From Basidiobolus meristosporus CBS 931.73 (taxonomy: Eukaryota; Fungi; Basidiobolomycota): DNA of 64,000 bases. The position numbers and the translations under genes are program-made. The notes beneath the pieces were generated by a model that was not told where the DNA came from, searched no databases, and was given only the letters and a program-made list of their open reading frames with translations. How positions within the stretch are numbered: the first letter of the stretch is position 1; every line of letters starts with the position of its first letter. This document shows, piece after piece, positions 21,690 to 61,390 of the stretch. The stretch is from assembly GCA_002104905.1 (NCBI GenBank), contig MCFE01000033.1:124001-188000 (forward strand). The letters run 5' to 3'.

Positions 21690-22430
21690 TCCAACATAGT
21701 CAAAGCCAAGTTGGACTTGAGAACCTTGGCTAGCATCTGAGCTCTGTTATCTCTAATCACATTACCCACCAAGTTTGGACTGGTCAAAGTTAATGGTCTT
21801 GGGTGCCTTGGCCAATGCCTAAGCGCTGTTGTCTCCAATCCAGCTATTGTACAAGTATAAAGAGGTCAGAGTTGAGTTGACATTGAACACCTCATCCAGC
21901 GCCTGAGCTCTGTTGTCTCCAATCAGTTCGTTGTGCAGGTTCAAAGCAGAGTCGAGTTGGTCTAGAGCGCTTCAATCAGTGCCTGAACTCCATTGCGAGA
22001 GATCAGGTTGCTACCGAAGTACAAAGTGGTCAGAGTCGAGCTGATTCTGAGTGCATTAGCAGTCTCCGATCGAGTTGTTGTGAAGGTACAAAGTGGTTAG
22101 CGAGGGGTTAGTCTCGAGCACCTCAGCCAGCACCTGAGCCCCGCTATTCTTGATCTTTTTGCTGACCAAGCTGAATTGGACTTGAGTGCCAGATTCAACG
22201 CCAGTCCTCCGTCACGTCCAATCTTGTTGCGTACAAATTTAGTGTGGTCAGACCAGAGCTAGTGCTGAGCATTGGATTTAATTGAATTACCCCAAAAGTC
22301 CAATATATGGCCAAAGTTGAGTTGATTTCAAGTGCCTGCCACAGCGCCTGAGCTCCGCTGTCCACAACCCTACACCTTGGCACCATCATACATATTTCAA
22401 AAAGCCTCCAAATCCACCTTTTACGCATTT
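21690..22430 (-). pseudogene. RNI/NLRC3-like leucine-rich-repeat pseudogene
   Basis: ~28-aa units such as GAQVLAEVLETNPSLTTLYLHNNSIGD, GVQALIEAL*TNSTL, RAQMLAKVLKSNLALTML; several stops and frameshifts; limits approximate. Confidence 0.8.
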
Positions 22431-34404: not shown

Positions 34405-34863
34405 ATGTCTCTTCGCGCCTTCTCCTCTTCCCTTTTCCGTAACTACACCGCTTCTGTTAGAGCCTCCCCTCTCTACAGAGCCGCATACTACTCTACTATC
34501 AAGAGATACACTGAAGACCACGAATGGGTCTCAGTTACCGATGGTGTTGGAACCGTCGGCGTCACTGACTACGCTCAAAAGGCCTTGGGAGACGTCGTCT
34601 TTGTAGATATCCCCGAGACCGGAGTCACCGTCGAGGCCAACGCTCAAATCGGCGCTGTCGAGTCGGTCAAGGCTGCCTCTGATATCTACTCTCCTCTTGC
34701 CGGAGAGATCGTCGAGTCCAACAGCGCTTTGGACTCCAGCCCTGGTTTGATCAACACCTCCCCCGAGAATGAAGGCTGGATTTGCAAGATCAAGCTCGCC
34801 GATGCCTCTGAGTTGGATGGCTTGATGGACGAAGACGCCTACAAGACTCACTGCGAGCACTAA
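34405..34863 (+). CDS. GCV3: Glycine cleavage system H protein, mitochondrial
   Basis: YTEDHEWV..GTVGVTDYAQKALGDVVFV..VESVKAASDIYSP (lipoyl Lys); N-terminal presequence. Confidence 0.97.
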   Translation: MSLRAFSSSLFRNYTASVRASPLYRAAYYSTIKRYTEDHEWVSVTDGVGTVGVTDYAQKALGDVVFVDIPETGVTVEANAQIGAVESVKAASDIYSPLAGEIVESNSALDSSPGLINTSPENEGWICKIKLADASELDGLMDEDAYKTHCEH

Positions 34864-34950
34864 TCCGTATACAAATGCATTTACTCTCATCACAATAAAC
34901 AGACCAATCTCCACTGCATGTTGTGACTTGTGAATTTCGTGGTTGGGGCT

Positions 34951-36157
34951 TTATTGTGGATTCTGGATGTAGCTAACAAACAACGGTATCCCACGGTCGG
35001 TGTGTATGACGAAGTAGAAAGGCCGGTTGCATTCGAATCGGAATGGCGGCGGTGGGAGGCAGAATGCCACCATAAGTATTGCGGTGGCCGCACTTGCCGT
35101 GGAGCCTGAGGAAAGGTTAGAGGGGCAGTCGCATATAAGAAAAAGAAACCCCACCAATACCTGTTTCGTCCACTTGAATTCTGCACTTGTGATGGATTTC
35201 TTTGACCTCAATAGGTAGCGCGGACAGCTCGTTCAACCCGGATACCGTTCTATCGAACACCTTCTTCACCCCGAATTGTTCAAGCCCTTCCTTTAGCTGG
35301 AAGCTTAGCTCCAGGTCGAACTTCGGAAGGACTACGCTTCCCTCACGGTCCATAGAGCGCTGTAAATAAACAAAGTCCCACTCCTCTTGAGTCATCATGG
35401 ACTCAGCCTCCTGGAAAGTCAGCACCTCCCGAGGGAGCACTATGCTGGCAGAGAATTTCTCCTCATTATACGGTAGTCTAAGGACTTGATATTTCTCCGT
35501 CTCTTTGTATTCCCACTTCTTCCCGTCCGAGTGCATCATCGAAGTCTGCACCTTTTGGGTTTTACCGGTGGAGAATTCTCCGCTACGCGTGTGCACGGGA
35601 TCGAACGACTTGGCCCAAGTGCCACGGAAGTATACGGAATTCAGCAGCATAACCGAGTTATGGGAGAAGCGCTTGTCGTCCTCAAAAAACTGCTTGAGGT
35701 GGCCGTTCGTCTTTCGCTCTATCCAGTCGTTCACCTCCTTGCCGTTCTTTGGAACCGGGAACCCCTCGGCCTCGAAAAGCCTTTGGATTTTATCAGCATA
35801 GGAAGGTAGTACGTGGTTTCCCCAGAGGGAATTCCCCACGATAAACTCGGTATGTTCCTTATCCTCTGTGCCGCCCACACTCTGGCTAAGGTACTCTTTC
35901 AGAGAGGTGCTTATGACCGAGTTGAGCTGTGCTAGTTGTCCGCACTTGTCGCCCTCGATGCTGAAATATGCCAAAAGCTCGTCCCTACTCTCTGCTTGCT
36001 CCGAGGTACCGTTTAGCAATAACAACAGGGCCAAGCTTATGGAGAGGGGTGAGTACAAAACGTTGCCTTCTTGGGCACTCAGATACTTGGAGAGTTTGGT
36101 GGAGATGCTGGTGACACTCTTGTAGAGCAAGGCATCTTGGTCGGATTCAAAATACAT
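34951..36157 (-). CDS. Serpin (intracellular, inhibitory-type hinge); one intron 35106-35160
   Basis: NVLYSPLSISLAL, VNDWIERKTNG, LLNSVYFRGTW, LPKFDLE, VDETG|STASAATA..NRPFYFVI..PLFV; probable start MYFESD at 36157. Confidence 0.92.
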
Positions 36158-36497
36158 GGGAATAGGCGGGTTGGTGTTGAGCAAATTGCTTTCCCGGTGA
36201 TTTATAGTGATATTGGGCCTGTGGCGTCGCCTTGCCCAGCTCTCCTTTCTAGGCAATCATGTAACTCTATTGGTGACACAAAGACATCATCGAATAGTTC
36301 TCAAAATACATCAAATGGGCAGGACTAATTGGAAATGCAGCAACACCGCCCTTCCGGGTATGGGGAAGGGGGTTTGATTTGGTTTGGTGAAGGCTCATTT
36401 ATTTCGCGCCAAGCCTTGGGACCCACTGCCATATTCGAACATGATTACGAGCTTCGTTGCACTGCAGCATTCTAATGATGGGGGAAGAGGAGCCGGT

Positions 36498-38086
36498 TCA
36501 CTTCTGCGAACATCCCGGGCAGTTATGCAGGATGTCGTGAACAAACAGATCGCACTCGATGCAGAAATGCTGATCGCACTTGGGACACCGGAAACGCGGG
36601 GTGATGTCCGACGGCGGGGACCCGTCAGTGGGCTCGTCCCGCTTGTTCTCGAAGGCTACCTGGCAAGCAAAGCAACAGGTGCTGGTGCAACTGGTTGGTG
36701 TGGCGGTGGGTTAATGGAAAGCATGGTCGGAGACGATCACGATGGGGGAACTTACTGCTGTGTATCGACATCCACGAAATTATCTACCGGAAATAGATGA
36801 TGGTACGAACGCGCCAAGTGTGGACTGGACACCAGCGTTAGGTTACACACGTCGCAATCAGTGGGCAACTCGCAGATCTTGGATTTGCATCGCGGACACA
36901 CATACCCACCGAGCACTAGCTTCTGGTGGCTACACATCAATCAGTTACTGGGATGAAACGCTTGGCCAAGTGCCTCGTTCTACTCCAACCTTACCATACA
37001 CAAAATGACGGGATGGACTCGACTATCCGCGTGGGGAATCCCATCTTGACTAGATTCGAGGAACTCTTGGCGGCTGTGGTGGGTGGGGGTGGAATCGTCT
37101 CAAACATGATGTCTCGGTAATGGTTGTCGTTCATGGCGACCGCAAATTTGCCCCCGGTCTCCCTACATAGGGTCTTGAACACTTGGACCTCTGCGGACAA
37201 CTGCACCATGGAGCACCGGATCTCCTCATCCTTCAGTAGCTGAATGGTTTCGTGGATGTTCCCGGGGTCGCAGGTCGTCAATGAGCCAAAGATCGCCAGG
37301 ATTTCCCGTGATCCATGGGCGGGTACGTGGCTAGTAAAGGGGAGATTAGACATTGGCGTCAATCAAACTTGTCAAGCGGTGGTGCTCGAACCTGAGCGAG
37401 CTCCGCGCCATCTCGAGAGCATTCTGCAGCGACGGCTCACCAATACAATCCTGATTGTTCTTGTTCCTTATGGCTCTGATGTGGTCCATGGGGTTACCTG
37501 CGTGTCGGAAGAATGTTTAGAATGGCCATCATTGGGCAACATCGGGCACAAACGTACCGCTCAGCTCAGTTAGCTTCTCGGCAATTCCATCTCGAGTGAT
37601 AATCAGTCCCAATTGACTGATAGGGTTCTGATCAAAATACTCCAAAACGAACGCTTCCACATAATTCACCGTAAGGCCTAGCCTGTGTGGGCGATAATCC
37701 TTCTCCATCATGTCCGCCGACATGTCCAAGATCAAGTACAAGTGGCGAATAATCCCACGGCGGATGGTCGATGTATCGCGTAAGAGGCTAGGTGGAGGGG
37801 AACAAAGAAGGATTAAAACCAAATCGCAAATTACGAAACTGGATCCTCAGGCCCAAACGTATCCACAGCGTTGATGGTGCCACTTCGGAGAAGGAAACAC
37901 TCACCGTCGACGCTTTTGTTGTTGTAGATTGGCGACCACGCTTCGTAGCGAGCCTTGCTCGTCTTCCTGAACCACATCCCAACTTCTTTTGTACTCTTCT
38001 TCCCAGGCGTAGCCTAAATTATTGTTGTTGGCATCATCGTCATCTTCCACTTCGTGTATTTTTGGGGGTTTGGTAGCTTGTGACAT
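36498..38086 (-). CDS. SSL1: TFIIH subunit Ssl1/p44, multi-exon
   Basis: [71 protein letters not shown]. Confidence 0.96.
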
Positions 38087-43991: not shown

Positions 43992-45696
43992 ATGGATATA
44001 GAGATGTCAGCGCATGAAAGTCAAGACCAAAAGCCCGAAGTTGTCTCAGCTGATACGGCGAGTGGATCCCATCCTGTTTCATTTTTACCAACATCGACAA
44101 GCGATAAGTATCCAGATCATGAGAAAAAGATGTCTGAGGAGCCAGAGGAGAAAAAATCCCTTTATCAACGCTTTCGCCTTTACATCCATATTGCTATTGT
44201 ACTCCTCTACACTGGGTATATGATTGCTGCATGGATTCTTCATGGAAAAAAGACCCTTGTGGCTTCCTTGCTCTGGGCCTTTGTTTCGTTAAAGATCATG
44301 TTCTACCACGTTCCTACCACCATTCTCACTAAGCCCTTAGGCTGGTTCTTCTCCAATCTAATTGCATTTGCTATGAGGTTCCCAAGCAAAGTTCGCTGGA
44401 TTGTATCTGTTGTCTTCACCGTCGGTCTGATTGTTGGTGTCACTCTGGGACTACCCGTGCATGAAGGCCAAGGAACCCTGGTCGACAGAGTGAGATCGTT
44501 GGCCGGCTTGTTCGTGTTTGTGCTAGTGCTCTACGCTACCTCTACTGATCGCAAGCGGATTCGTTGGGCCACTGTACTCTCCGGGCTTTTGCTTCAGTAT
44601 CTTCTCGGATTGTTCATCCTCAAGACCTCGGTTGGTTACGACATCTTCCACTGGATCTCGCACATGTGCACCACCCTCCTCGAGTTCTCCAACAGTGGTT
44701 TCGCTTTCATTGTTGGTGATAAGGTAGCCGCCATGGGAACATTCGCTACTGGAGTTCTGCCAGCTGTCCTCTTCTTCGCTGCTATCGTGAAGATCGTGTA
44801 CTTCTTTGGAGGCATGCAAGTGGATGGTGAAGAAGATCGCCTGGCTCATGGTCAGACTGATGAACACCAGTGGTGCCGAGTCCACCGTAGCCGCCGCCTC
44901 GCCCTTCGTTGGTATGGGTGAATCATCATTGCTGGTTCTTCCCTTCTTGGAAACCATGACCAAGTCGGAGATCCACTCCACCATGACATCAGGATTTGCC
45001 ACTATCTCCGGCTCAGTGCTGGTCGGATTCATTTCCATGGGAGTCAACCCACAACCACTCGTCACCTCATGTGTCATGTCAGTTCCATGCGGTATGCTTA
45101 TCTCCAAGATGCGCTATCCTGAGGATGGCGAGCCAGTGACCAAGGGTAAGGTTCGCATTCCACCAGCCGCTGAAGAGGAGTGTAATTTCTTGCATGCAGC
45201 ATCCAACGGAGCTGCTCAAGGTATCCACTTGGTGCTGTTGATTGCTGCCACTGTTCTTGCCTTCATGTCACTCCTCGCCTTGGTGAACGCTTTCCTTACC
45301 TGGTTTGGTAGCTTCATCAACATCGACCACCTAACTCTTCAGTTGGTCATGGGATACATCTATGTGCCATTCATCTGGTTTGTTGGTGTCGCCCAGAAGG
45401 ACGTGTTGGTTGTTTCTCGCTTGATGGCCACCAAGACATTCGTCAACGAGTTCGTCGCCTTCGGTGAGCTCACCACCCCAGCTGTAGCTGATGCATTGAC
45501 CGCTCGCTCCAAACATGTTGCGGTGTACTGCCTCTGTGGATTCGCCAACTTCGGATCGATCGGTATTCAGATCGGATCATTGGGATCCATGGCACCTTCC
45601 CGCAGACAAGATCTTGCCGAACTATCGTTCTCAGCCATGTTGTGTGGCACCATGTCAACCTTGATGAGTGCCGCCATTGCAGGAATGCTAATGTAG
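43992..45696 (+). CDS. CNT: Concentrative nucleoside transporter (SLC28) copy 1; apparent +1 insertion near 44819
   Basis: ASPFVGMGES, GFATISGSV, FVNEFVAF, CGFANFGSIGIQIG; ORFs 43992..44921 and 44806..45696 overlap. Confidence 0.9.
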
Positions 45697-46348
45697 GCTA
45701 TCAAATTGAACTTCACCAAAGCAGTAAATGTAAATAGTATCAGTATTTTCAACAAAAATTTGTGAAATCATTATTCCTATTGGTCCATGAATATATGAAT
45801 CTGTTTAGAAATACATAAGTCCAGCGCAATGCAAATAGTATCATAAATAAAACGCCATACAAAGTATACCCAGAGTTAACCCGCTGAGGGTAGAGTCAAT
45901 CGAATATCACTTTGTGTTACATAGTGTGCCAAAGCCGAAAATGACCAAATAATGATTTTGGATTTGTTGAAAGCCACCGGCACTCATTGGCAGGGCCCAA
46001 GGAAGTGTTAACGATTTGATTGAATGATCGAAGCTATATCTGACCCCGCGCAATCGCCACATATTTGGTAAATATCAGGTGAGGCACCTTCTTCCTGAAT
46101 GGATGGGTGATAATGGAAGGAAATCTCATTCTCAGTGATCTAGGTCAGAGTCTAGATGGATGAAATTACCATATTCGTTTTAGCGATTCCTGTAGGAACT
46201 CCATGTGTTCCCAAGAATAAAGTTTAGCGTGTGCAGGGTAGCGTGCAACTTCACATATAAAAGAACTCCCACACCTCCATTCGAATCATCAACCTACAAG
46301 CTCAACGCATTCTAACTTCCTATTCCACATTTCTTTGTGAATATTGAA

Positions 46349-48026
46349 ATGTCTACCCACGAAGCCTCGGACCAAAAAGTCGAATCGGTCCCCGTCTCCT
46401 TGTTGCCCACCACTGTCCACGACACTTACATTGAGGATGACTGTGAGAAAAAGCAGGAGGTAACCGAAGTGACTGAGGAAAAGAAGTCGCTTTACCAACG
46501 CTGCCGCATTTACATTCATATTGCCGCTGTATTGCTCTACACTGGCTACATGATTGCCGCGTGGATTCTCCATGGAAAGAAGACCCTTGTGGCCTCCTTG
46601 CTCTGGGCTTTTGTATGTCTTAAGATCATGTTCTACCACGTTCCTACCTCCATTGTCGCCAAGCCATTGGGCTGGTTCTTCTCTCAGCTGATCTCATTTG
46701 CCATGAGATTCTCGAGCCGAGTTCGCTGGATTGTATCTGTTGTCTTTACCGTCGGTCTGATTGTTGGTGTCACCCTGGGACTACCTGTGCATGAAGGCCA
46801 AGGAACCCTGGTTGACAGAGTGAGATCGTTAGCCGGCTTGTTCGTGTTTGTGCTAGTGCTCTTCGCGACCTCCACCGACCGCAAGCGGATTCGTTGGGCC
46901 ACTGTACTCTCGGGACTTTTGATCCAGTATCTTCTCGGTTTGTTCATCCTCAAGACCTCGGTTGGTTACGACATCTTCCACTGGATCTCGCACATGTGCA
47001 CCACCCTCCTCGAGTTCTCCAACACTGGCTTCGCTTTCATTGTTGGCGATAAGGTAGCCGCCATGGGAACGTTCGCTACTGGAGTTCTGCCAGCTGTCCT
47101 CTTCTTCGCTGCCATCGTGAAGGTCGTGTACTTCTTTGGAGGCATGCAGTGGATGGTGAAGAAGATCGCCTGGCTCATGGTCAGACTGATGAACACCAGT
47201 GGTGCCGAGTCCACCGTAGCCGCCGCCTCGCCCTTCGTTGGTATGGGTGAATCATCATTGCTGGTTCTTCCCTTCTTGGAAACCATGACCAAGTCAGAGA
47301 TCCACTCCACCATGACATCAGGATTTGCCACCATCTCCGGCTCAGTGCTGGTCGGATTCATTTCCATGGGAGTCAACCCACAACCACTCGTCACCTCATG
47401 TGTCATGTCAGTTCCATGTGGTATGCTTATCTCCAAGATGCGCTATCCTGAGACTGGTGAGCCAGTGACCAAGGGCAAGGTTCGCATTCCACCCGCCCCC
47501 GAAGAGGAGTGTAACTTCTTGCATGCAGCTGCTAACGGAGCTGCTCAAGGTATCCACTTGGTGCTGTTGATTGCTGCCACCGTTCTTGCCTTCATGTCAC
47601 TCCTCGCCTTGGTGAACGCTTTCCTTCACCTGGTTTGGCAACTTCATCAACATCGATAACTTGACTCTTCAGTTGGTCATGGGATACATCTATGTGCCAT
47701 TCATCTGGTTTGTTGGTGTCGCCCAGAAGGACGTGTTGACTGTGTCTCGCTTGATGGCCACCAAGACATTCGTCAATGAGTTCGTCGCCTTCGGTGAGCT
47801 CACCACCCCAGCTGTAGCTGATGCATTGACTGCTCGCTCCAAGCATCTTGCGGTGTACTGCCTCTGTGGATTCGCCAACTTCGGATCGATTGGTATTCAG
47901 ATCGGATCATTGGGATCCATGGCACCTTCCCGTAAACAAGATCTTGCCGAACTATCGTTCTCAGCCATGTTGTGTGGCACCATGTCAACCCTGATGAGTG
48001 CCAACATTGCGGGATTGCTGATGTAA
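46349..48026 (+). CDS. CNT: CNT copy 2; apparent +1 insertion near 47627
   Basis: Same motifs; TATAAAAG upstream near 46256. Confidence 0.9.
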
Positions 48027-49167
48027 ACCACGAATTTCTCCAGGTATCCTAACATGGATGAGCAACCAAAATTATGTGTGTATCTGTATATAGACCAGGA
48101 GTACCAGTGGTAAACTGTAAATAGCCAGAGATTATCGAATAGTATATCATGTAGAGCCCTTCTTCTCATCACTGCCAAACTTACCCTAGATCTTTATATT
48201 TACGCGCAATGAATATCACTGTGACCAATATATTATTAAATTGATAGATACCCTACATGGTTTTCATTCATACGATTACTCATCAACTAAGTTGCAGACT
48301 GGCTTAATAGCCCCATTCCAGGGTTCGTGATAGCCTTTAAAACGGGTCGTGGGTATCTACAGTCCTCCCATAACAGAAATATCCCACTGAACCAAAATGC
48401 TTAAATATGCTGCATTAGGCATGGTGTTGATCCAGCTTTAGTAAAGGTTCGAATGGATGTTGACCAATACACAATATTGGTATTTTCATAGCGGATCTCG
48501 ACAGAATAATTGATCAACCACCGCAGCCTGCAGATGGCAACCTTTAAATGTTTGTACAATGCATATAGTGCCATAAATATGGACCAACACAAGTTTATCA
48601 GTACATTATATTGGCTGACGATTTCCGTCTAACTAAATGGGCTAACAAATAAATGCAATAGTCGTGGTTTCGAAATCTTATCTTACCTAATATAATTTTG
48701 ACAACAGTGGTGTTCAAGCCTATGATGATCATTACTCAAATCATTTCGCGAGAATTCCTGGGTCCACTAAGCCATCGATCTGCAGAGCGCCACTCCTTCG
48801 CATTGGTAGATTCAAAGAAGGGGTCAATGATTTGATTGAATGATCGAACAAGCTATATCTGACCCCACGGAGTAATCCCACAATTAATGAAAATCAGGTG
48901 AGACACCTTCTTCCTGAATGGATGGGTGACAATGGAAGGATATCTCATTCTCAGTAATCTCGACCGGAGTCCAGATGGATGAAATTACCATATTCGTTTT
49001 AGCGATTCCTGTAGGAACTCCATGTGTTCCCAAGAATAAAGTTTAGCGTGTGCAGGGTAGCGTGCAACTTCACATATAAAAGAACTCCCACACCTCCATT
49101 TGAATCATCAACCTACAAGCTCAACGCATTCTAACTTCCTATTCCACATTTCTTTGTGAATATTGAA

Positions 49168-50845
49168 ATGTCTACCCACGAAGCCTCGGACCAAAAAGTC
49201 GAATCGGTCCCCGTCTCCTTGTTGCCCACCACTGTCCACGACACTTACATTGAGGATGACTGTGAGAAAAAGCAGGAGGTAACCGAAGTGACTGAGGAAA
49301 AGAAGTCGCTTTACCAACGCTGCCGCATTTACATTCATATTGCTGCTGTATTGCTCTACACTGGCTACATGATTGCCGCGTGGATTCTCCACGGAAAGAA
49401 GACCCTTGTGGCCTCCTTGCTCTGGGCTTTTGTGTGTCTGAAGATCATGTTCTACCACGTTCCTACCTCCATTGTCGCCAAGCCATTGGGCTGGTTCTTC
49501 TCTCAGCTGATCTCATTTGCCATGAGATTCTCGAGCCGAGTTCGCTGGATTGTATCTGTTGTCTTTACCGTCGGTCTGATTGTTGGTGTCACCCTGGGAC
49601 TACCCGTGCATGAAGGCCAAGGAACCCTGGTTGACAGAGTGAGATCGTTGGCCGGCTTGTTCGTGTTTGTGCTAGTGCTCTTCGCGACCTCCACCGACCG
49701 CAAGCGGATTCGTTGGGCCACTGTACTCTCGGGACTTTTGATCCAGTATCTTCTCGGTTTGTTCATCCTCAAGACCTCGGTTGGTTACGACATCTTCCAC
49801 TGGATCTCGCACATGTGCACCACCCTCCTCGAGTTCTCCAACACTGGCTTCGCTTTCATTGTTGGCGATAAGGTGGCCGCCATGGGAACGTTCGCTACTG
49901 GAGTTCTGCCAGCTGTCCTCTTCTTCGCTGCCATCGTGAAGGTCGTGTACTTCTTTGGAGGCATGCAGTGGATGGTGAAGAAGATCGCCTGGCTCATGGT
50001 CAGACTGAATGAACACCAGTGGTGCCGAGTCCACCGTAGCCGCCGCCTCGCCCTTCGTTGGTATGGGTGAATCATCATTGCTGGTTCTTCCCTTCTTGGA
50101 AACCATGACCAAGTCAGAGATCCACTCCACCATGACATCAGGATTTGCCACTATCTCCGGCTCAGTGCTGGTCGGATTCATTTCCATGGGAGTCAACCCA
50201 CAACCACTCGTCACCTCATGTGTCATGTCCGTTCCATGCGGTATGCTTATCTCCAAGATGCGCTATCCTGAGACTGGCGAGCCAGTGACCAAGGGCAAGG
50301 TTCGCATTCCACCCGCCCCCGAAGAGGAGTGTAACTTCTTGCATGCAGCTGCTAACGGAGCTGCTCAAGGTATCCACTTGGTGCTGTTGATTGCTGCCAC
50401 CGTTCTTGCCTTCATGTCACTCCTCGCCTTGGTGAACGCTTTCCTTACCTGGTTCGGCAACTTCATCAACATCGATAACTTGACTCTTCAGTTGGTCATG
50501 GGATACATCTATGTGCCATTCATCTGGTTTGTTGGTGTCGCCCAGAAGGACGTGTTGACTGTGTCTCGCTTGATGGCCACCAAGACATTCGTCAACGAGT
50601 TCGTCGCCTTCGGTGAGCTCACCACCCCAGCTGTAGCTGATGCATTGACCGCTCGCTCCAAGCATCTTGCGGTGTACTGCCTCTGTGGATTCGCCAACTT
50701 CGGATCGATCGGTATTCAGATCGGATCATTGGGATCCATGGCACCCTCCCGCAAACAAGATCTTGCCGAACTATCATTCTCGGCCATGTTGTGTGGCACC
50801 ATGTCAACCTTGATGAGTGCTAACATCGCCGGATTGTTGATGTAA
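49168..50845 (+). CDS. CNT: CNT copy 3; apparent +1 insertion near 50008
   Basis: Near-identical to copies 2 and 4. Confidence 0.9.
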
Positions 50846-51907
50846 GCTCTGACTCTCTAATTGTCGAGGTTTCTATCTATATCGACCGGAAAGAATGATG
50901 GAAATGGTGTCGATCTGTAAATAGCCCTAGTTCTATATTCTTTATTCGGGGTATTTGTGAAGTATACTATATAGAGTACCTGTTCATATCTCTCTTTGCT
51001 TTGTTTCGTTTATGCCATAACTCAAAAATTAAACTGATTAGTAACATACCTACTGACTTGGTATTCGCCTCTGTTTCCCAGCAGCCAATAGTAGATCCGA
51101 GATCTTTCATCCAACCAAACTTATTTCGATTTAATGGCCGATTTCGCAAACTGATAATCAAGCGATATGCCAATCGTGTAAATATGGTTTCGCAACATGC
51201 CCATACATTGTAGTTCCATGTCAATGATATCAATCAGACTAAGTAGACACGGACTTGTATGTGGTGTTGGTATGAAAATTATCCTGCTTGTAAATAGACA
51301 GACTCGGTTCAAAGCAAAAAACATCACTAAAGGAGGTTCATATAAATCCGATATATTGTTGCCGTCTGGCCAAATGCACCAAAGCCTGCGCCCATTCCTA
51401 TCACTTTGTGCCATAGAAAGCTACTAAATCCCATTTGTGGTAAGGCCAATGATGGTCGGTACTGAAATCATGTCACGAGAATTCCTGTTGCCACCAAGCC
51501 ATGAAGCTACAAAACGCCACGCCCTCGCATTGGTGGATGGTTGGAAGTTGCCAATCTAGTTTCAGCAGTGGATTTGATTGAATGATCGAACAAGCTATAT
51601 CTGACCCCAGGCAGTAATCCTATATTTGATGAAACTCAGGTGACACGGAATTCTGGAATGGATGGGTAAGAATCGAAAGAAATCTTACTCGGAGTAATCT
51701 CGAACGGAGTCCAGATGGATGAAATTACCATATTCGTTTTAGCGGTTCCTGTGGGAACTCTATGTGTTCCCAAGAATAAAGTTTAGCGTGTGCAGGGTAG
51801 CGTGCAACTTCACATATAAAAGAACTCCCACACCTCCATTCGAATCATCAACCTACAAGCTCAACGCATTCTAACTTCCTATTCCACATTTCTTTGTGAA
51901 TATTGAA

Positions 51908-53585
51908 ATGTCTACCCACGAAGTCTCGGACCAAAAAGTCGAATCGGTCCCCGTCTCCTTGTTGCCCACCACTGTCCACGACACTTACATCGAGGATGAC
52001 TGTGAGAAAAAGCGGGAGGTAACTGAAGTGACTGAGGAAAAGAAGTCGCTTTACCAACGCTGCCGCATTTACATTCATATTGCCGCTGTATTGCTCTACA
52101 CTGGCTACATGATTGCCGCGTGGATTCTCCATGGAAAGAAGACCCTTGTGGCCTCCTTGCTCTGGGCTTTTGTGTGTCTTAAGATCATGTTCTACCACGT
52201 TCCTACCTCCATTGTCGCCAAGCCATTGGGCTGGTTCTTCTCTCAGCTGATCTCATTTGCCATGAGATTCTCGAGCCGAGTTCGCTGGATTGTATCTGTT
52301 GTCTTCACCGTCGGTCTGATTGTTGGTGTCACCCTGGGACTACCCGTGCATGAAGGCCAAGGAACCTTGGTTGACAGAGTGAGATCGTTAGCCGGCTTGT
52401 TCGTGTTTGTGCTAGTGCTCTTCGCGACCTCCACCGACCGCAAGCGGATTCGTTGGGCCACTGTACTCTCGGGACTTTTGATCCAGTATCTTCTTGGTTT
52501 GTTCATCCTCAAGACCTCGGTTGGTTACGACATCTTCCACTGGATCTCGCACATGTGCACCACCCTCCTCGAGTTCTCCAACACTGGCTTCGCTTTCATT
52601 GTTGGCGATAAGGTAGCCGCCATGGGAACGTTCGCTACTGGAGTTCTGCCAGCTGTCCTCTTCTTCGCTGCCATCGTGAAGGTCGTGTACTTCTTTGGAG
52701 GCATGCAGTGGATGGTGAAGAAGATCGCCTGGCTCATGGTCAGACTGATGAACACCAGTGGTGCCGAGTCCACCGTAGCCGCCGCCTCGCCCTTCGTTGG
52801 TATGGGTGAATCATCATTGCTGGTTCTTCCCTTCTTGGAAACCATGACCAAGTCAGAGATCCACTCCACCATGACATCAGGATTTGCCACCATCTCCGGC
52901 TCAGTGCTGGTCGGATTCATTTCCATGGGAGTCAACCCACAACCACTCGTCACCTCATGTGTCATGTCAGTTCCATGTGGTATGCTTATCTCCAAGATGC
53001 GCTATCCTGAGACTGGTGAGCCGGTGACCAAGGGCAAGGTTCGCATTCCACCCGCCCCCGAAGAGGAGTGTAACTTCTTGCATGCAGCTGCTAACGGAGC
53101 TGCTCAAGGTATCCACTTGGTGCTGTTGATTGCTGCCACCGTTCTTGCCTTCATGTCACTCCTTGCCTTGGTGAACGCTTTCCTTACCTGGTTTGGCAAC
53201 TTCATCAACATCGATAACTTGACTCTTCAGTTGGTCATGGGATACATCTATGTGCCATTCATCTGGTTTGTTGGTGTCGCCCAGAAAGGACGTGTTGACT
53301 GTGTCTCGCTTGATGGCCACCAAGACATTCGTCAACGAGTTCGTCGCCTTCGGTGAGCTCACCACCCCAGCTGTAGCTGATGCATTGACCGCTCGCTCCA
53401 AGCATCTTGCGGTGTACTGCCTCTGTGGATTCGCCAACTTCGGATCGATTGGTATTCAGATCGGATCATTGGGATCCATGGCACCCTCCCGCAAACAAGA
53501 TCTTGCCGAACTATCGTTCTCAGCCATGTTGTGTGGCACCATGTCAACCTTGATGAGTGCCAACATTGCGGGGTTGCTGATGTAA
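51908..53585 (+). CDS. CNT: CNT copy 4; apparent +1 insertion near 53286
   Basis: Near-identical to copies 2 and 3. Confidence 0.9.
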
Positions 53586-55109
53586 ACTGTGCCTTTACTT
53601 GGAAAGCGCAAACATTGCTTCACTAATCAGCCAGATAGAGCGATGGAAAGAGTGTACATAGCCAGAATTTATCCATCAACAAAAATTTCCCAGCAAAATA
53701 GTATATTTTATAGAAAAACGATTTACAGCTTACCATATATACATATATATATACCCTGACCCATTATTTGCCACATATTTGAATTCCACTACCCCTTATA
53801 CATAAATAAATTGTTTAGTACTCTACTTCTCTGCATTCTCGTTACGTCCATTATTCACCACAAGTAGGATGGCTACTAAACCCGCTATTTTAAAGCAGGA
53901 GTTTCATGTTTGCCCTCTTGTGGTTATCAGCGTTATCTTACAATAGATATGCCTCCTCAGCCAACAATTTCTTTAACTTTGATCAGGTCGTAAAGAAATT
54001 AAACCCTAGAAGATGAGCAATGTAGTTTGCTTCTACCTCATTGTGTAAGTAAATCAACACGTGAAGGTTTCAACCGAAGGCACCCACTTATTTTACGTCC
54101 TCTATATCTTTTCACAATGTCAAATTTTTTGGAATTAGTGAGCCTTTCACAGGACTGCGCAGAGCATACACACAAGTTCGTCTTGATGTCATTAAGGACC
54201 CAGCCAAGAATCAATTAACAAGTAGTGCATTCATCGTTACTGGATCCGCACCACAGTTACCAACATATCTGGGTTACCCCCACACGTTAAGGGTTTGCAA
54301 TTTAGGCTAACTGATTCCGCCAGCTTAGGGCAAACGCGGTATTAAAAGACATCTAATGCCCCTTTATGTAGTCAACATGTCGGAAAAGATTTGTTTTTTA
54401 TCGTTTCATATGGTAATACATTACAAGAATCCCTGGCCTTAGGAATTTGTTTAGAGTATAGAAAAATCCAGCGGCCACTTGAGGCGAAGGTTGAACCCAT
54501 GATTGATGGAGAATATTAATGCTTACGCCTTGAGCAAAAGCGTACTCCAGGTGGGTGCATTTGTCGTCTGATCTAATCTACTGACCAAATATCCGTAATC
54601 TTATCTTGCTCGATAGAATGCAGATATTGCCTGATGCAAAGTAACCAAGTATGCGGTAAGGCCAATGATAATCAATAATCAAATCATATCGCGAAAATAT
54701 CTGTTATCACGACGTGTTGGATTTGATAAAAAGTCCTCATTGGTGGGCTTAAGACAGTTGGTAACTTGACCTCGGCATCTAATCCACTCGAATCAACAAA
54801 TTAAGTATATCTAACCTCATACAGTCAATATGAATTTGGTAACTGACATTTGAGACAACAATTTACCAAAATGATCGTTGATAATTGGAAGAAATCCCCA
54901 TTCAGATTAATCTCGACCGGAGTCCAGGTGCGAGAAATTCCCATATTCGTCCGGCTACTTCAAGTGGGAACTCCCTGTTTACCGAGGAAATAAAGTTAGG
55001 TGTGCGTGATGAAGCGTACATTAGCGAATATAAAAGAACTCCAAGGTCGCACCTTCAATCTTCAAACCACAGGCTCTGCGTACTCTACCGACCCAACCTT
55101 GCTTTCCGT

Positions 55110-56796
55110 ATGGAGATTGAAATGACAGTTCGCGAAGACCCGGATCAAAAGGTTGAATCTGTTCCCGTCTCTTTGCTGCCTACCACTGTTCATGATACTT
55201 ATATCGACGACGAATGCGAGAAAAAAAAGGCCAGCGAGGAACCTGTGGTTGAAAAAACATTGTATCAGCGCTACCGACTTTACCTTCATATTGCTGCTGT
55301 ACTGCTCTACACTGGTTACATGATTGCCGCATGGATTCTTCACGGAAAGAAGACCCTTGTGGCCTCCTTGCTCTGGGCCTTTGTTTGTCTGAAGATCATG
55401 TTCTACCATGTCCCTACCACCATTCTCACGAAGCCATTGGGCTGGTTCTTCTCTCGGCTGATCTCATTTGCCATGAGATTCCCAAGTCGAGTTCGCTGGA
55501 TTGTATCTGTTGCCTTCACTGTGGGTCTAATTGTTGGGGTCACTCTGGGATTACCTGTGCATAAGGGTCAAGGAACCCTAGTCGACAGAGTGAGGTCGTT
55601 GGCCGGCATGTGTGTGTTTGTGCTAGGGCTCTACGCTACCTCCACTGACCGCAAGCGGATTCGTTGGGCCACTGTGCTCGCTGGTATTTTGATCCAGTAT
55701 CTTCTCGGTTTGTTCATCCTCAAGACCTCGGTTGGTTACGACATCTTCCACTGGATTTCCAATCTGTGTACGACACTCCTTGAATTCTCCAACACTGGCT
55801 TCGCTTTCATTGTTGGTGATAAGGTGGCTGCTATGGGAACATTCGCCACCTCAGTTTTACCAGCAGTCCTGTTCTTTGCCTCCATTGTGAAGATTGTGTA
55901 CTATTTCGGAGGAATGCAATGGATGGTCAAGAAGATCGCCTGGCTCATGGTCAGACTGATGAACACCAGTGGTGCCGAGTCCACCAGTAGCCGCTGCCTC
56001 CCCCTTCGTTGGTATGGGTGAATCATCATTGCTGGTCCTTCCCTTCCTGGAATCCATGACCAAATCGGAGATTCATTCTACCATGACCTCGGGATTTGCC
56101 ACTATCTCCGGATCAGTGTTGGTCGGATTCATTTCCATGGGAGTCCATCCGCAACCACTTGTCACCTCATGTGTCATGTCCGTCCCATGCGGTATGCTTA
56201 TTGCTAAGATGCGCTACCCCGAAACTGGTGAGCCAGTGACCAAGGGCAAGGTTCGCATTCCACCCGCCCCCGAGGAGGAGTGTAACTTCTTGCATGCAGC
56301 ATCCAACGGAGCTGCGCAAGGTATCCACTTGGTGCTGTTGATTGCTGCCACCGTTCTTGCCTTCATGTCACTCCTCGCCTTGGTGAACGCTTTCCTTACC
56401 TGGTTTGGCAACTTTATCGATATTGACCACCTGACTCTTCAGTTGGTCATGGGATACATCTATGTGCCATTCATCTGGTTTGTTGGTGTCGCCCAGAAGG
56501 ACGTGTTGACTGTGTCTCGCTTGATGGCCACCAAGACATTCGTCAACGAGTTCGTCGCCTTCGGTGAACTTACCACCCCAGCCATCGCTGATTCCTTGAC
56601 TGACCGCTCCAAGCATCTTGCGGTGTACTGCCTCTGTGGATTCGCCAACTTCGGATCGATTGGTATTCAGATCGGATCATTGGGTTCCATGGCGCCTTCC
56701 CGCAAACAAGATCTTGCCGAACTATCGTTCTCAGCCATGTTGTGTGGCACCATGTCGACCTTAATGAGTGCCAACATTGCAGGAATGTTGATGTAG
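55110..56796 (+). CDS. CNT: CNT copy 5; apparent +1 insertion near 55986
   Basis: MEIEMTVRE start; same motifs; TATAAAAG near 55029. Confidence 0.9.
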
Positions 56797-57449
56797 ACGA
56801 ACGGCCATAAGAAATGCAATCATCGCAGGCATTGCTGTATAATTCGAGCAGAAAGAACGATGGATATAGTGTAGATCTGTAAATAGCTGAATTTAATATC
56901 ATGAACAATAGATTCCAACATATTCTATATGGAACGCCCGCTTATTCCTCACCTTTACATGGCTCTGTTTCGTATATGTCAGGAATTTCACTACAATTGA
57001 TACATAATTAAATCGATTAGTACTGTACGTCGCGCCTTCAGTTACCAATCGAGCATCATCTTATCTGTATCCTGGAGATATCCTGGTATCGTGCTTGATG
57101 TCTACCTATATGTCAAGTCCGATAGTTGCCTAGCATCAAATCATTGCGCTTGGATACGAGTGGTAACAAATCACAAAGCGCACCTTCTCTCAAACATCCG
57201 AACCGCACTGATATGGCAAATCTAAATATACATAAATGTCTGTAATATGATTTTTTTGCTAGTCCAGATGCTCTATGTTACCATTTATTGCCACCAAGTT
57301 CCGATCAGAATTCCGCTGGAGCTACCAAAATAAAATTAAGCGTGTGTTGAGTAACGTACGCTCGAAACTATAAAAGGGCATCAAGTGGTGTAGCTCCTTA
57401 AGCAGATCACAAACTCCACTCTTTTTACCCTAAACGTTATAACATTCCC

Positions 57450-59132
57450 ATGGATTTAGAAATGTCAACTCGGGAAAACCAGGATCAGAAGGTTGAATCC
57501 GTTCCTGCTTCTCTATTGCCTACCAACGTCCATGAAACCTTTGTTGAAGACGAGTCGGAGAAGAAAAAGAGTTCGGAGCAAGTGGTGAAGCCTACACTGT
57601 ATCAGCGCTACCGACTTTACATTCACATTGCTGCTGTGCTTCTCTACACCGGTTATATTATTGCCGCATGGATTCTCCACGGCAGACAGAGTCTCGTGGC
57701 CTCCTTGCTCTGGGCATTTGTTTGCCTTAAGATCATGTTTTACCATGTCCCTACTACCATTCTCACAACACCATTGGGCTGGTTCTTCACCTTCTGGATC
57801 GACTTTGCCATGAAATTCTCGCTGAGGGTGCGCTGGATAGTCTCCCTTGTTTTCACTGTGGCCTTGATTGTTGGTGTGACATTGGGATTGCCAGTGGATG
57901 AGAGCAAAGGTACCCTAGCTCAAAGAGGTCGATCATTAGGCGGCTTGTGCGTTTTCATTATCGTACTCTATGTCACATCGAAGGATCGCAAAAAGATTCG
58001 TTGGGCCACTGTCATTGTTGGAGTCCTTATGCAATATCTTCTTGGCCTGTTCATCCTCAAGACTTCTGTCGGTTATGACATCTTCAACTGGTTGTCACAT
58101 CTGTGTACCACACTCCTTGATTTCTCCAACACTGGTATGGCGTTCATCGTTGGTGACAAGGTGGCCAATTCAGGATCATTCGCCACCGCAGTTTTACCAG
58201 CAGTTCTATTCTTCGCTTCTATCGTCAAGATTGTTTACTTTCTTGGAGGTATGCAATGGATTGTCAGTAAGATTGCCTGGTTCATGGTTAGAGTAATGAG
58301 TACCAGCGGTGCTGAATCCACTGTTGCTGCGGCTTCGCCTTTTGTTGGTCAGGGAGAATCGTCATTACTGGTACTTCCATTCTTGGAAACCATGACCAAA
58401 TCGGAGATTCATTCTACCATGACATCTGGCTTTGCCACCATTTCTGGATCAGTATTGGTTGGATTCATCTCCATGGGTGCCGACCCGCAGACACTCATTA
58501 CCTCATGTGTCATGTCAACTCCATGCGGTTTAGCCATCTCTAAGATGCGTATTCCTGAGACTGGGGAGCCAGTTACAAAAGGAAAGGTTCATATTCCACA
58601 AACAGAGGAGAAGGAATCTAATTTCCTACACGCTGCGGCCAACGGTGCCGCTCAAGGTATTCATCTGGCGCTTTTGATTGCGGCCACCGTTCTTGCCTTC
58701 ATGTCGCTGCTAGCCTTGGTGAACGCATTCCTTACCTGGTTTGGCCGCTTTATTAACATCGAGCAGTTAACCCTTCAGTTGATCATGGGATACATCTATG
58801 TTCCATTCATCTGGTTTGTTGGTATTCCCCAAGAAAATGTGTTGACTGTTTCTCGCTTGATGGCCACCAAGACATTCGTCAACGAGTTCGTCGCCTTCGG
58901 TGAGCTCACCACCCCAGCCATTGCCGACGTATTACTCCCTCGCTCCAAGCATCTTGCGGTGTACTGTCTCTGTGGATTCGCCAACTTCGGATCAATCGGT
59001 ATTCAAATCGGAGCATTGGGATCGATGGCCCCTTCACGTAGACAGGATCTTGCCGAACTGGCGTTCTCGGCCATGTTGTGCGGTACCATGTCGACCTTGA
59101 TGAGCGCTACCATCGCTGGTATGCTAATGTAG
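57450..59132 (+). CDS. CNT: CNT copy 6, intact 560 aa
   Basis: Uninterrupted ORF; ASPFVGQGES. Confidence 0.96.
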   Translation: MDLEMSTRENQDQKVESVPASLLPTNVHETFVEDESEKKKSSEQVVKPTLYQRYRLYIHIAAVLLYTGYIIAAWILHGRQSLVASLLWAFVCLKIMFYHVPTTILTTPLGWFFTFWIDFAMKFSLRVRWIVSLVFTVALIVGVTLGLPVDESKGTLAQRGRSLGGLCVFIIVLYVTSKDRKKIRWATVIVGVLMQYLLGLFILKTSVGYDIFNWLSHLCTTLLDFSNTGMAFIVGDKVANSGSFATAVLPAVLFFASIVKIVYFLGGMQWIVSKIAWFMVRVMSTSGAESTVAAASPFVGQGESSLLVLPFLETMTKSEIHSTMTSGFATISGSVLVGFISMGADPQTLITSCVMSTPCGLAISKMRIPETGEPVTKGKVHIPQTEEKESNFLHAAANGAAQGIHLALLIAATVLAFMSLLALVNAFLTWFGRFINIEQLTLQLIMGYIYVPFIWFVGIPQENVLTVSRLMATKTFVNEFVAFGELTTPAIADVLLPRSKHLAVYCLCGFANFGSIGIQIGALGSMAPSRRQDLAELAFSAMLCGTMSTLMSATIAGMLM

Positions 59133-59722
59133 GCTACGGTTTTCTTGAAGATCTGTATATAGTATCAAATCATCAATATCTTTAAATCAAATTTTAATTA
59201 TCCAACGGTAGTTTTAATAATTATGTTACATACACCTTAATATTAACACCTGTACATATCACCAGTAAATATAACCACTCATTCATTTCACATTTACATT
59301 TCCGTATCTGTTTTGTCACTTTTTCTGATTCGGATTCATTTTGTTTTTTGGTTTCCATTTCTAAAAATATCCTAGTGCCTGAAGGAGATACTGATTTTCG
59401 GATAACACTGAAAATCCGAATATCCGCACAAATCCTTGCGGTTTTCCCAATTTTTTTCCACTGCAATCGACAATCGCCAATCTAGAAAGAATTCGTGGAA
59501 TTCAGGTGACAGCCAGATATGGTAATAACAGCTTTCTGGAATGGCTCGCATACCAAATCAGGGATATTTCCAGGGTTCAATTTAGGGATTGCCAAAAATG
59601 TTGCAATAATTATATTATGGTTTGTGGTTGGTGTGGTGCTAGGACATATGATTTTCGCTGCAGCAGAATCAAAATTTACATTGTACAACGAGATTCATCG
59701 GAATGCTATAGATGAGGACAGC

Positions 59723-61390
59723 CTACATTAGCATACCAGCGATGGTGGCGCTCATCAAGGTCGACATGGTACCGCACAACATGGCCGAGAACGCCAGTTC
59801 GGCAAGATCCTGTCTACGTGAAGGGGCCATCGATCCCAATGCTCCGATTTGAATACCGATTGATCCGAAGTTGGCGAATCCGCAGAGACAGTACACTGCC
59901 AAGGACTGAGTACGTGGAAGCAATTTGGCAACCATTTCTTTGCTGGTCAGTGTTCCAAAGGCCACAAACTCGTTCACAAACATCTTGGTAGCCATCAGAC
60001 GAGCTACATCCACGCAATCGCGCTGAGGAATGCCAACAAGCCAGATGAATGGAACAAAAATATATCCCATAATCAACTGCAGGGTCAAGTTGTCAATGTT
60101 GATAAAGTTCCCGAACCAAGTGAGCAGAGCGTTCACCAAAGCAAGAAGTGACATGAATGCAAGCACCGTAGCTCCGATCAAAAGTGCCAAGTGGATACCC
60201 TGGGCCGCACCGTTGGCAGCAGCGTGTAGGAAATTGGCTTCCTTGTCCTCAGAAGGTGGGATACGCACTTTTCCTTTTGTAACTGGCTCTCCAGTCTCGG
60301 GGATACGCATCTTCGAGATGGCTAAACCGCAAGGGGTTGACATGACACAGGAGGTAATGAGAGACTGGGAATCAACGCCCATGGAGATGAATCCAACCAA
60401 CACTGATCCAGAAATGGTGGCAAAACCGGACACCATTGTTGAGTGAATCTCGGCCTTTGTCATGGTTTCTAAGAACGGTAGAACCAGTAATGCCGATTCA
60501 CCTTGGCCAACGAAGGGAGAAGCAGCGGCAACAGTGGATTCCGCTCCGCTGGTGCCCATAACTCTGACCATGAACCAGGCTACCTTTCTCACCATCCATT
60601 GCATACCTCCAAAGAAGTACACGATCTTCACGATAGCCGCAAAGAAGAGCACAGCTGGAAGAACAGTGGTAGCGAATACCTTGGTGTTTGCAACATCGTC
60701 GCCAGCAATGAAGGCCAAACCGTTGTTCGAGAACTCGAGAAGAGTCGAGCACAAGTCAGATAACCAATGGAAAATATCGTAGCCAACCGATGTCTTGAGG
60801 ATAAACAAGCCCAAGATGAACTGCATCAAGATGCCTACAATGACGGTGGCCCAGCGGATCTTCTTACGGTTGGACGAGGTTGCATATAGCACGAGAAGGA
60901 ATACACATAGACCGCAAAGCGATCTGACTCTGTCAACAAGGCTGCTGTGACCTTCTTTCACAGGAAGCCCGAGCGTCACACCGGCAATGAGGCCAACGGT
61001 GAAAATGATCGCGCTGATCCAGCGAACTTTACTAGGGAATCTCATGGCAAATCTAATCAAGGTCGAAAAGAACCAGCCCAAAGGCTTGGTAAGGATGGTG
61101 GTGGGCACGTGGTAGAACATAATCTTTAACGAAACAAATGCCCAGATCAGCGACATGACAAGGGTGTCACGTCCATGAAGAATCCATGCGGCGATCATAT
61201 ATCCAGTATACAATACCACCGCAGCGATATGGAAGTAGAGACGATAGCGTTGATAAAGTGATCCCTTTTCCTCGGGCTTTTCGGGTTGCTTCTTTTCATC
61301 TTCATCAATGTAAGAGTCATTTGCAGTGGTAGGCAAGAAAGAGACCGGGACTGACTCCGTTTGCGCGTTTTGAGCTTCGTGGACAGACAT
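59723..61390 (-). CDS. CNT: CNT copy 7, intact 555 aa, inverted
   Basis: Uninterrupted ORF; ASPFVGQGES; most divergent copy. Confidence 0.96.
   Translation of the reverse strand: MSVHEAQNAQTESVPVSFLPTTANDSYIDEDEKKQPEKPEEKGSLYQRYRLYFHIAAVVLYTGYMIAAWILHGRDTLVMSLIWAFVSLKIMFYHVPTTILTKPLGWFFSTLIRFAMRFPSKVRWISAIIFTVGLIAGVTLGLPVKEGHSSLVDRVRSLCGLCVFLLVLYATSSNRKKIRWATVIVGILMQFILGLFILKTSVGYDIFHWLSDLCSTLLEFSNNGLAFIAGDDVANTKVFATTVLPAVLFFAAIVKIVYFFGGMQWMVRKVAWFMVRVMGTSGAESTVAAASPFVGQGESALLVLPFLETMTKAEIHSTMVSGFATISGSVLVGFISMGVDSQSLITSCVMSTPCGLAISKMRIPETGEPVTKGKVRIPPSEDKEANFLHAAANGAAQGIHLALLIGATVLAFMSLLALVNALLTWFGNFINIDNLTLQLIMGYIFVPFIWLVGIPQRDCVDVARLMATKMFVNEFVAFGTLTSKEMVAKLLPRTQSLAVYCLCGFANFGSIGIQIGALGSMAPSRRQDLAELAFSAMLCGTMSTLMSATIAGMLM

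Follow-up and report, generated by a model that had tools for sequence, protein, structure and literature searches.

A nucleoside transporter gene cluster of Basidiobolus meristosporus with Met and Gln classes at a base-contacting residue, probably grown from a convergent gene pair

The DNA described here is a stretch of 64,000 nucleotides of contig MCFE01000033.1 (positions 124,001 to 188,000, forward strand) of the fungus Basidiobolus meristosporus CBS 931.73; we call this whole stretch the window and give all positions in its own coordinates. Between 43992 and 61390 it carries seven copies of a gene of about 1.7 kb of the CNT/SLC28/NupC family of nucleoside transporters, copies 1 to 6 on the forward strand and copy 7 on the reverse strand (Table 1). 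The intact copies 6 and 7 match the Pfam domains Nucleos_tra2_N, Gate and Nucleos_tra2_C above the curated cut-offs (E-values down to 1e-77), and the copy 6 protein is identical to the database protein P0151. Copies 1 to 5 are assigned to the family by their 72-79% DNA identity to copies 6 and 7 over the whole length. Copies 2 to 4 are 98.4-99% identical in DNA among themselves; copies 1 and 5 are each about 88-90% identical to them and 86% identical to one another. Copy 6 is more distant (about 77-79% to copies 1 to 5) and copy 7 shares about 72-74% with all the others. The cluster is a set of seven paralogs, probably subtelomeric, as is usual for such expansions. Their products of about 560 residues should each act as nucleoside importers of the elevator type, like the rest of the family.

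The copies fall into two classes at one position of hairpin HP1. We read the states from a six-frame motif scan of the window: FVGMGE occurs five times, always on the forward strand, and FVGQGE twice, once on each strand, while the second pair of interest, the Ser-Val of ISGSVLVG, is the same in all seven copies. The preliminary description had given Met for copies 1 to 5, Gln for copies 6 and 7 and Ser-Val throughout; this is what we find, and both codon positions that it quoted are exact.

Table 1. Positions in the window of the seven CNT copies and of the inverted repeat that joins the last two.
Feature	Position	Strand	Details
CNT copy 1, Met class	43992..45696	+	Met codon 44914-44916; Ser-Val 45013-45018; private +1 G at 44820
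CNT copy 2, Met class	46337..48026	+	GTG first codon; Met codon 47243-47245; private +1 C at 47627
CNT copy 3, Met class	49156..50845	+	GTG first codon; Met codon 50063-50065; private +1 A at 50008
CNT copy 4, Met class	51896..53585	+	GTG first codon; Met codon 52802-52804; private +1 A at 53285
CNT copy 5, Met class	55110..56796	+	Met codon 56014-56016; private +1 A at 55986
CNT copy 6, Gln class	57450..59132	+	Intact 560-aa open reading frame; Gln codon CAG 58350-58352; Ser-Val 58449-58454
CNT copy 7, Gln class	59723..61390	-	Intact 555-aa open reading frame, convergent with copy 6; Gln codon CAA 60503-60505
Inverted repeat I6 (590-bp spacer flanked by the 3' parts of copies 6 and 7)	58847..60008	.

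Among solved structures, the best matches of the intact copies are human and bovine CNT3 (6KSW and 8TZ1; E about 1e-94), followed by vcCNT of Vibrio cholerae (3TIJ). HMMER aligned the copy 6 segment SPFVGQGESSLLVLPF without a gap in the motif region to human CNT3 (hCNT3; NIFVGQTESPLLVRPY) and to vcCNT (NIFVGQTEAPLVVRPF). The alignment with CNT3 covers residues 129-559 of copy 6 and is interrupted by gaps only in the interval 487-500, well away from the motif. The Gln of copy 6 stands opposite Gln341 of hCNT3 (FVGQTE) and, by counting along the 3TIJ chain, corresponds to Gln154 of vcCNT, which a published table equates with hCNT3 Gln341, hCNT1 Gln320 and NupC Gln147 (PMC5465479). In the human proteins the two pairs are S319/Q320 and S353/L354 in hCNT1, G313/M314 and T347/V348 in hCNT2, and G340/Q341 and S374/V375 in hCNT3. 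For hCNT1 and hCNT2, which have no solved structure in the PDB copy used, the comparison was made through a bat CNT2 (P0112; GNIFVGMTE ... SGTVLG) and the published residue tables; the bat Met and the Met of copies 1 to 5 share one alignment column. The site is thus the known CNT selectivity site, as the preliminary description had proposed, and the human residue numbers that it used agree with the literature.

In vcCNT the side chain of Gln154 touches the uracil base directly (PMC4139061). The other known ligand contacts, namely the HP1 Glu, FVNEFVAF in hairpin HP2 and CGFANFGS in transmembrane helix 10 (TM10), are identical in the seven copies when these are aligned to 6KSW and 3TIJ (residue list from PMC5465479), so that Met/Gln is their sole difference at a known ligand-contacting position. 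The Met/Gln split at this base-touching residue is real, but it would be an ordinary case of a known selectivity switch, since Met is the prevailing state in the genus and frequent in the whole family (see below). Copies 1 to 5 carry the CNT2-type Gly-Met pair in HP1; the CNT2-type Thr-Val pair of TM7 (TM4b in vcCNT) is absent from all seven copies, which have Ser-Val. Copies 6 and 7 have the CNT3-type combination of Gly-Gln and Ser-Val. All seven have Gly in place of hCNT3 Thr342, and none has the CNT3-type Asn at the Na+ site (hCNT3 Asn336, vcCNT Asn149), where they carry Ser (A-S-P-F-V-G) like NupC (Ser142); in a set of 262 CNT homologs this column holds Ser in 141 and Asn in 94.

How old is the Met state? 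A word-index protein search added one protein of B. ranarum, P0001, and five more B. meristosporus paralogs from other contigs, P0155 to P0159, which share 63-67% identity with copy 6; all six read FVGMGE. The dispersed paralogs are annotated as full-length proteins of 551-560 aa, apart from P0157, whose 864-aa model includes a fused ABC domain; P0155, P0156 and P0158, for which the DNA was read, are intact. Met is therefore found in 10 of the 12 CNT genes of B. meristosporus, the two Gln genes being the minority. Since all five dispersed paralogs and the syntenic B. ranarum ortholog P0001 have it, Met is the majority and old state in Basidiobolus, predates the amplification and is not an innovation of the amplified copies. 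The earlier proposal that the recently amplified copies had converged on the CNT2 residue is not borne out.

Outside the genus, Met is a recurrent alternative. Among the 120 proteins nearest to copy 6, ten of them Basidiobolus rows, 100 have Gln, 12 Met and eight Ala, Cys, Leu or Ser. The 12 Met proteins are eight from Basidiobolus (two being models of copies 1 and 2), two from Entomophthora muscae and one each from Mycoemilia and Podochytrium; further fungal cases were found in Coemansia, in Dissophora and in additional Entomophthora paralogs. The 262 homologs comprise 197 with Gln and 43 with Met, with A, L, C, S, N and H also seen at the site, and at least 25 Q/M changes are counted on their FastTree phylogeny. 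The pairing of Gly-Met with Ser-Val is the third commonest combination (26/262). The position is thus a recurrent evolutionary toggle across the family. Met in fungal CNTs, although outnumbered by Gln, is a frequent alternative, and this goes part of the way towards refuting the reading in the preliminary description.

The arrangement in B. ranarum bears on how the cluster arose. The contig with P0001 (L001, JASJQH010006925.1) is collinear with the window, window positions 34462-37500 matching its positions 1-2850. The syntenic locus lies between the Ssl1/ABCF3/GATA genes on one side and the CBM_5_12/FTR1 genes on the other. In B. ranarum it has only two CNT genes, which are convergent: P0001 on the plus side, with ATG (Met), and a 554-aa gene on the minus side, with CAA (Gln). 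The latter (L001:12397-14061, minus strand) is the ortholog of copy 7, which has CAA too, and the convergent Met/Gln pair mirrors copies 6 and 7. We propose that the ancestor had a convergent pair as still seen in B. ranarum, with a Met-type gene on the plus side and a Gln-type gene on the minus side, and that the plus side would have expanded in B. meristosporus to six copies, five Met and one Gln.

Maximum-likelihood trees place the Basidiobolus genes in one clade (100/100) with two parts, one made up of the dispersed Met paralogs and the other of the syntenic loci, namely the array of B. meristosporus and the pair of B. ranarum. Within the latter, copy 7 and its B. ranarum ortholog are basal, followed by P0001 and then by copy 6 as sister to copies 1 to 5 (100/99). 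The data do not agree with the idea that either Met or Gln arose just once within the locus: approximately unbiased (AU) tests rejected both the grouping of P0001 with copies 1 to 5 (p = 0.02) and that of the three Gln genes (p = 0.0017), with the caveat that these groups were named after the tree had been seen and that gene conversion violates the tree model. Three changes are needed in every scenario, whether a Gln ancestor with three gains of Met, a Met ancestor with two reversions or a mixed history, so that this count favours no polarity. Each Q/M change takes two nucleotide substitutions, CAG becoming ATG via CTG or AAG. At the codon level, parsimony over the nine genes of the two syntenic loci needs two codon changes with a Met ancestor of the plus lineage and a change in copy 6, against three otherwise.

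These counts matter for a different history, in which Gln is ancestral and the lineage of copies 1 to 5 went independently from Gln to Met, converging on the CNT2 residue with a new purine or analogue bias. It draws on the predominance of Gln in fungal CNTs outside Basidiobolus (the 100 of 120 given above), on the branching of the Gln copies 6 and 7 outside copies 1 to 5 and on the equal parsimony of three independent gains. Yet P0001 and all five dispersed paralogs are already Met, codon parsimony prefers a Met ancestor of the plus lineage, the second pair is Ser-Val and not the Thr-Val needed for a CNT2-like phenotype, and gene conversion undermines polarity read from any single tree. We regard this history as rather unlikely.

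Gene conversion has indeed left its marks on the locus. The 3' ends of copies 6 and 7 (58847-59135 and 59720-60008) are nearly identical, with one difference over the last 140 or so coding nucleotides, compared with about 74% identity of the genes overall; their third-position divergence falls to 0.02 in the last segment compared and the last three 60-nt bins hold 0, 0 and 1 differences. These 3' ends mark a recent conversion tract between inverted paralogs. Copy 6 is also a mosaic elsewhere, with runs of up to 12 consecutive informative sites that are copy 7-like. In B. ranarum (L001 10001-14061) the two paralogs differ from one another at third positions by 0.32, as against 0.53-0.57 from their B. 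meristosporus counterparts, which points to concerted evolution within the species. Conversion therefore makes polarity taken from any one tree unreliable. In spite of such exchange among paralogs, the Met/Gln dimorphism has persisted in both species. The B. ranarum pair even shows 13 differences in the bin that holds the motif (nt 900-959), compared with 3 and 2 in the flanking 60-nt bins; such a peak would be expected if selection keeps the two types apart, and is only suggestive.

Two routes by which conversion could have moved the residue were considered and set aside. First, the Gln of copy 6 did not come from copy 7 in one clean tract, as the flanking diagnostic sites at nt 935, 938 and 948 are of the plus-lineage type and the codons differ (CAG and CAA). 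Around the motif, however, 9 of 13 informative sites of copy 6 (nt 893-953) are copy 7-like, compared with 38% overall, and an old, eroded tract from copy 7 at the Gln codon could conceivably lie there. Second, the Met of copies 1 to 5 might have been imported from the dispersed paralogs: silent divergence from P0155 around the motif is 0.42 for copies 2 and 5 and 0.57-0.60 for copies 6 and 7, and in the C-terminal half, too, it is lower for the Met copies. This is suggestive only, since shared codon bias could mimic the effect.

In the assembly as deposited, copies 1 to 5 each contain exactly one private extra base, and removing it restores a full-length open reading frame (ORF); copies 6 and 7 have no such insertion. 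The annotated models of copies 1 and 2 are probably wrong, since they get past the insertions by means of introns that do not exist or of changed splicing. Indeed, the JGI model of copy 1 (P0153) matches only from 44851 on, 3' of the insertion, and that of copy 2 (P0152, K493DRAFT_296911) spans its insertion with a 58-nt intron (47615-47672). As regards the starts, initiator ATG is found in copies 1, 5 and 6 and in the B. ranarum gene; in copies 2 to 4 the next in-frame ATG lies four codons 3' of the GTG (46349 in copy 2), which is where the annotated model begins.

The Met class could accordingly be read as five dead genes, each hit by its own one-base insertion and perhaps selected against toxic nucleoside uptake, so that the contrast between the classes would have no function in this strain. 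The restriction of the lesions to copies 1 to 5 speaks for this, as do the GTG starts of copies 2 to 4 and the fact that three of the insertions do not lengthen a homopolymer run, as the other two do; moreover, CNT uptake sensitises fungi to toyocamycin-type nucleosides (PMC9431476), and its loss could be advantageous. However, constraint is not relaxed. The ratio of nonsynonymous to synonymous divergence (dN/dS) is 0.06-0.13 in all pairwise comparisons, and in copies 2 to 4 dN is 0 with dS of 0.036-0.067, their private branches carrying 30 synonymous and no nonsynonymous changes. The copies are under strong purifying selection and show no decay or further lesions. That all five lesions are insertions is also, in our judgement, more what errors in a long-read consensus would give than what natural mutation would.

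Read contigs point the same way. Those of runs X1, X2 and X3 were compared with positions 51000-56900, which take in the insertion sites of copies 4 and 5, and their only two indels there are at these two sites, both without the extra base. The X1 contig 53105-53333 (depth about 300) lacks the copy 4 insertion and, at the equivalent place, that of copy 2; an X2 contig has its clip at 53286 and reads GGACGTGTTG after two A's. Over the copy 5 site the X3 contig 55848-56532 is without the extra base at a depth of 750-1000, compared with about 10-16 on sequence of the copy 2 to 4 type. Run X3 behaves like RNA, in that one of its contigs is spliced at GT..AG introns and its depth does not reach beyond the gene; copy 5 is by far the deepest copy in it and intact. 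X3 is probably nearer to the assembled strain than X1 and X2 are: at the single-nucleotide polymorphism at 54885 it agrees with the window where X1 and X2 differ, and these two differ at 55021 as well. Since dN is 0 in copies 2 to 4 and the contigs lack both testable insertions, the insertions are likely artefacts of assembly or strain. Pseudogene status of copies 1 to 5 was dropped as the leading view on these grounds, together with the dN/dS of about 0.1, and five dead genes now seem to us an unlikely explanation. With good confidence we consider the Met genes functional in the species, and the insertions either errors of the consensus or peculiar to the culture that was assembled.

Some further observations were made in the window. 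A spliced X3 contig lies upstream of copy 5 (54770-55101); its introns 54811-54866 and 54974-55051 read CT..AC on the plus strand, that is GT..AG on the minus strand, which suggests an unannotated divergent or antisense transcript. A conserved minus-strand ORF of 115-116 aa runs antisense to the 5' part of copies 2 to 5 (46289-46639, 49108-49458, 51848-52198 and 55062-55409) and is probably a by-product of codon composition. The G+C content is 0.37-0.44 over positions 1-22000 and 0.45-0.51 in the remainder, with a sharp step near 22000.

What the two classes would transport can be approached through known relatives. Human and mammalian CNT2 (SLC28A2), selective for purine nucleosides and uridine, resembles copies 1 to 5 in its Gly-Met pair. 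It differs from them in the second pair (Thr-Val, not Ser-Val), in the residue that follows the Met (Thr, not Gly) and at the Na+ site (Asn, not Ser); identity is about 40% and the N-terminal extension of the animal proteins is absent from the fungal copies. The broadly selective CNT3 (SLC28A3) shares Gly-Gln and Ser-Val with copies 6 and 7, and its HP2 Glu and TM10 Phe/Asn/Ser are conserved in the Basidiobolus copies; its Thr342 and Asn336 are replaced in these by Gly and Ser. Bacterial vcCNT and E. coli NupC have the same fold and the HP1 motif FVGQ-x-E in about 400 residues, without the N-terminal helices; we know of no study of a Met variant of either. Because the Na+-site Asn of hCNT3 and vcCNT is Ser in the Basidiobolus proteins, as in NupC, we infer that they are probably coupled to H+. 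CaCNT of Candida albicans, the only characterised fungal member of the family, is H+-coupled and takes up purine nucleosides and uridine; it is a single gene, in contrast to the array of B. meristosporus. Its example demonstrates uptake of purine nucleosides and of toxic adenosine analogues by fungal CNTs; it carries toyocamycin-type nucleosides (PMC9431476).

In vcCNT the Gln of HP1 hydrogen-bonds the pyrimidine base, and Met would remove this bond, as in mammalian CNT2. The Met class would thus most likely be less friendly to pyrimidines and biased to purine nucleosides and uridine, with the Gln class broad and CNT3-like; the difference would be quantitative and not all-or-none, because no copy departs from the preceding Gly or from Ser-Val. 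In hCNT1, the S319G/Q320M protein that keeps Ser in the second pair is broad and hCNT3-like, and a CNT2-like phenotype needs Thr-Val (PMC7440666). With Gly-Met and Ser-Val, the Met class would therefore not be a copy of CNT2. The likeliest effect of Met, by analogy, is a quantitative shift away from those pyrimidines that rely on the Gln hydrogen bond, and the alternative of a small effect, or of none, has to be taken seriously. Of the selectivity change put forward in the preliminary description, a changed or purine-biased preference is plausible, in a weaker form than was claimed, given Ser-Val in place of Thr-Val and the broad hCNT1 variant. Its suggestion of an analogue-related selectivity is reasonable in kind, because CaCNT transports toyocamycin-type nucleosides.

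It could also be that Met and Gln are near-neutral in this protein background, two tolerated residues that toggle while the classes are equal in selectivity. The frequency of Q/M changes in the family, the other residues tolerated at the site and the commonness of Gly-Met with Ser-Val would all agree with this, as would the simple breadth of hCNT1 with Gly-Met. On the other hand, at least three changes have occurred within one genus although each takes two substitutions through Leu or Lys, the Gln is in direct contact with the base, and in hCNT3 the choice of permeants is altered by Q341C; there is also the local, only suggestive, peak of differences at the motif of the B. ranarum pair. Near-neutrality is possible but somewhat doubtful.

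Altogether, we favour, with a probability of roughly 0.6, a CNT cluster that grew from a convergent Met/Gln pair, in which Met is old in the genus and the classes differ quantitatively in base preference. Several points weigh against it. Q320M alone, in the hCNT1 work of Loewen et al. from 1999, reportedly had little effect. The broad rather than purine-selective transport by hCNT1 with Gly-Met and a second-pair Ser may apply here too, and with Gly for Thr342 in the fungal pocket any extrapolation from human CNTs is uncertain. As for the state of the genes, the assembly as it stands has a broken reading frame in each of the five Met copies, and the pattern of one insertion per copy fits neither random assembly error nor ordinary decay. 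The polymorphisms at 54885 and 55021 mean that X1 and X2 may be another isolate, and their contig over the copy 4 site could derive from copies 2 or 3.

Going one step further, the Met/Gln dimorphism may have been kept by selection in the syntenic convergent pair despite conversion, the Met type then being amplified five-fold, and the residue may be a natural switch, used repeatedly, by which a gut-associated fungus partitions and boosts its uptake of different nucleosides; we offer this only tentatively. In other respects the locus is an ordinary expansion of a known transporter family. If the classes truly differ in base preference, it would provide natural pairs of about 80% identity, alike in the Gly and the Ser-Val around the site but not in the one residue known to touch the base, and the roles of Gln and Met in CNT selectivity and analogue uptake could then be separated more cleanly than in human CNT1/CNT2 chimeras.

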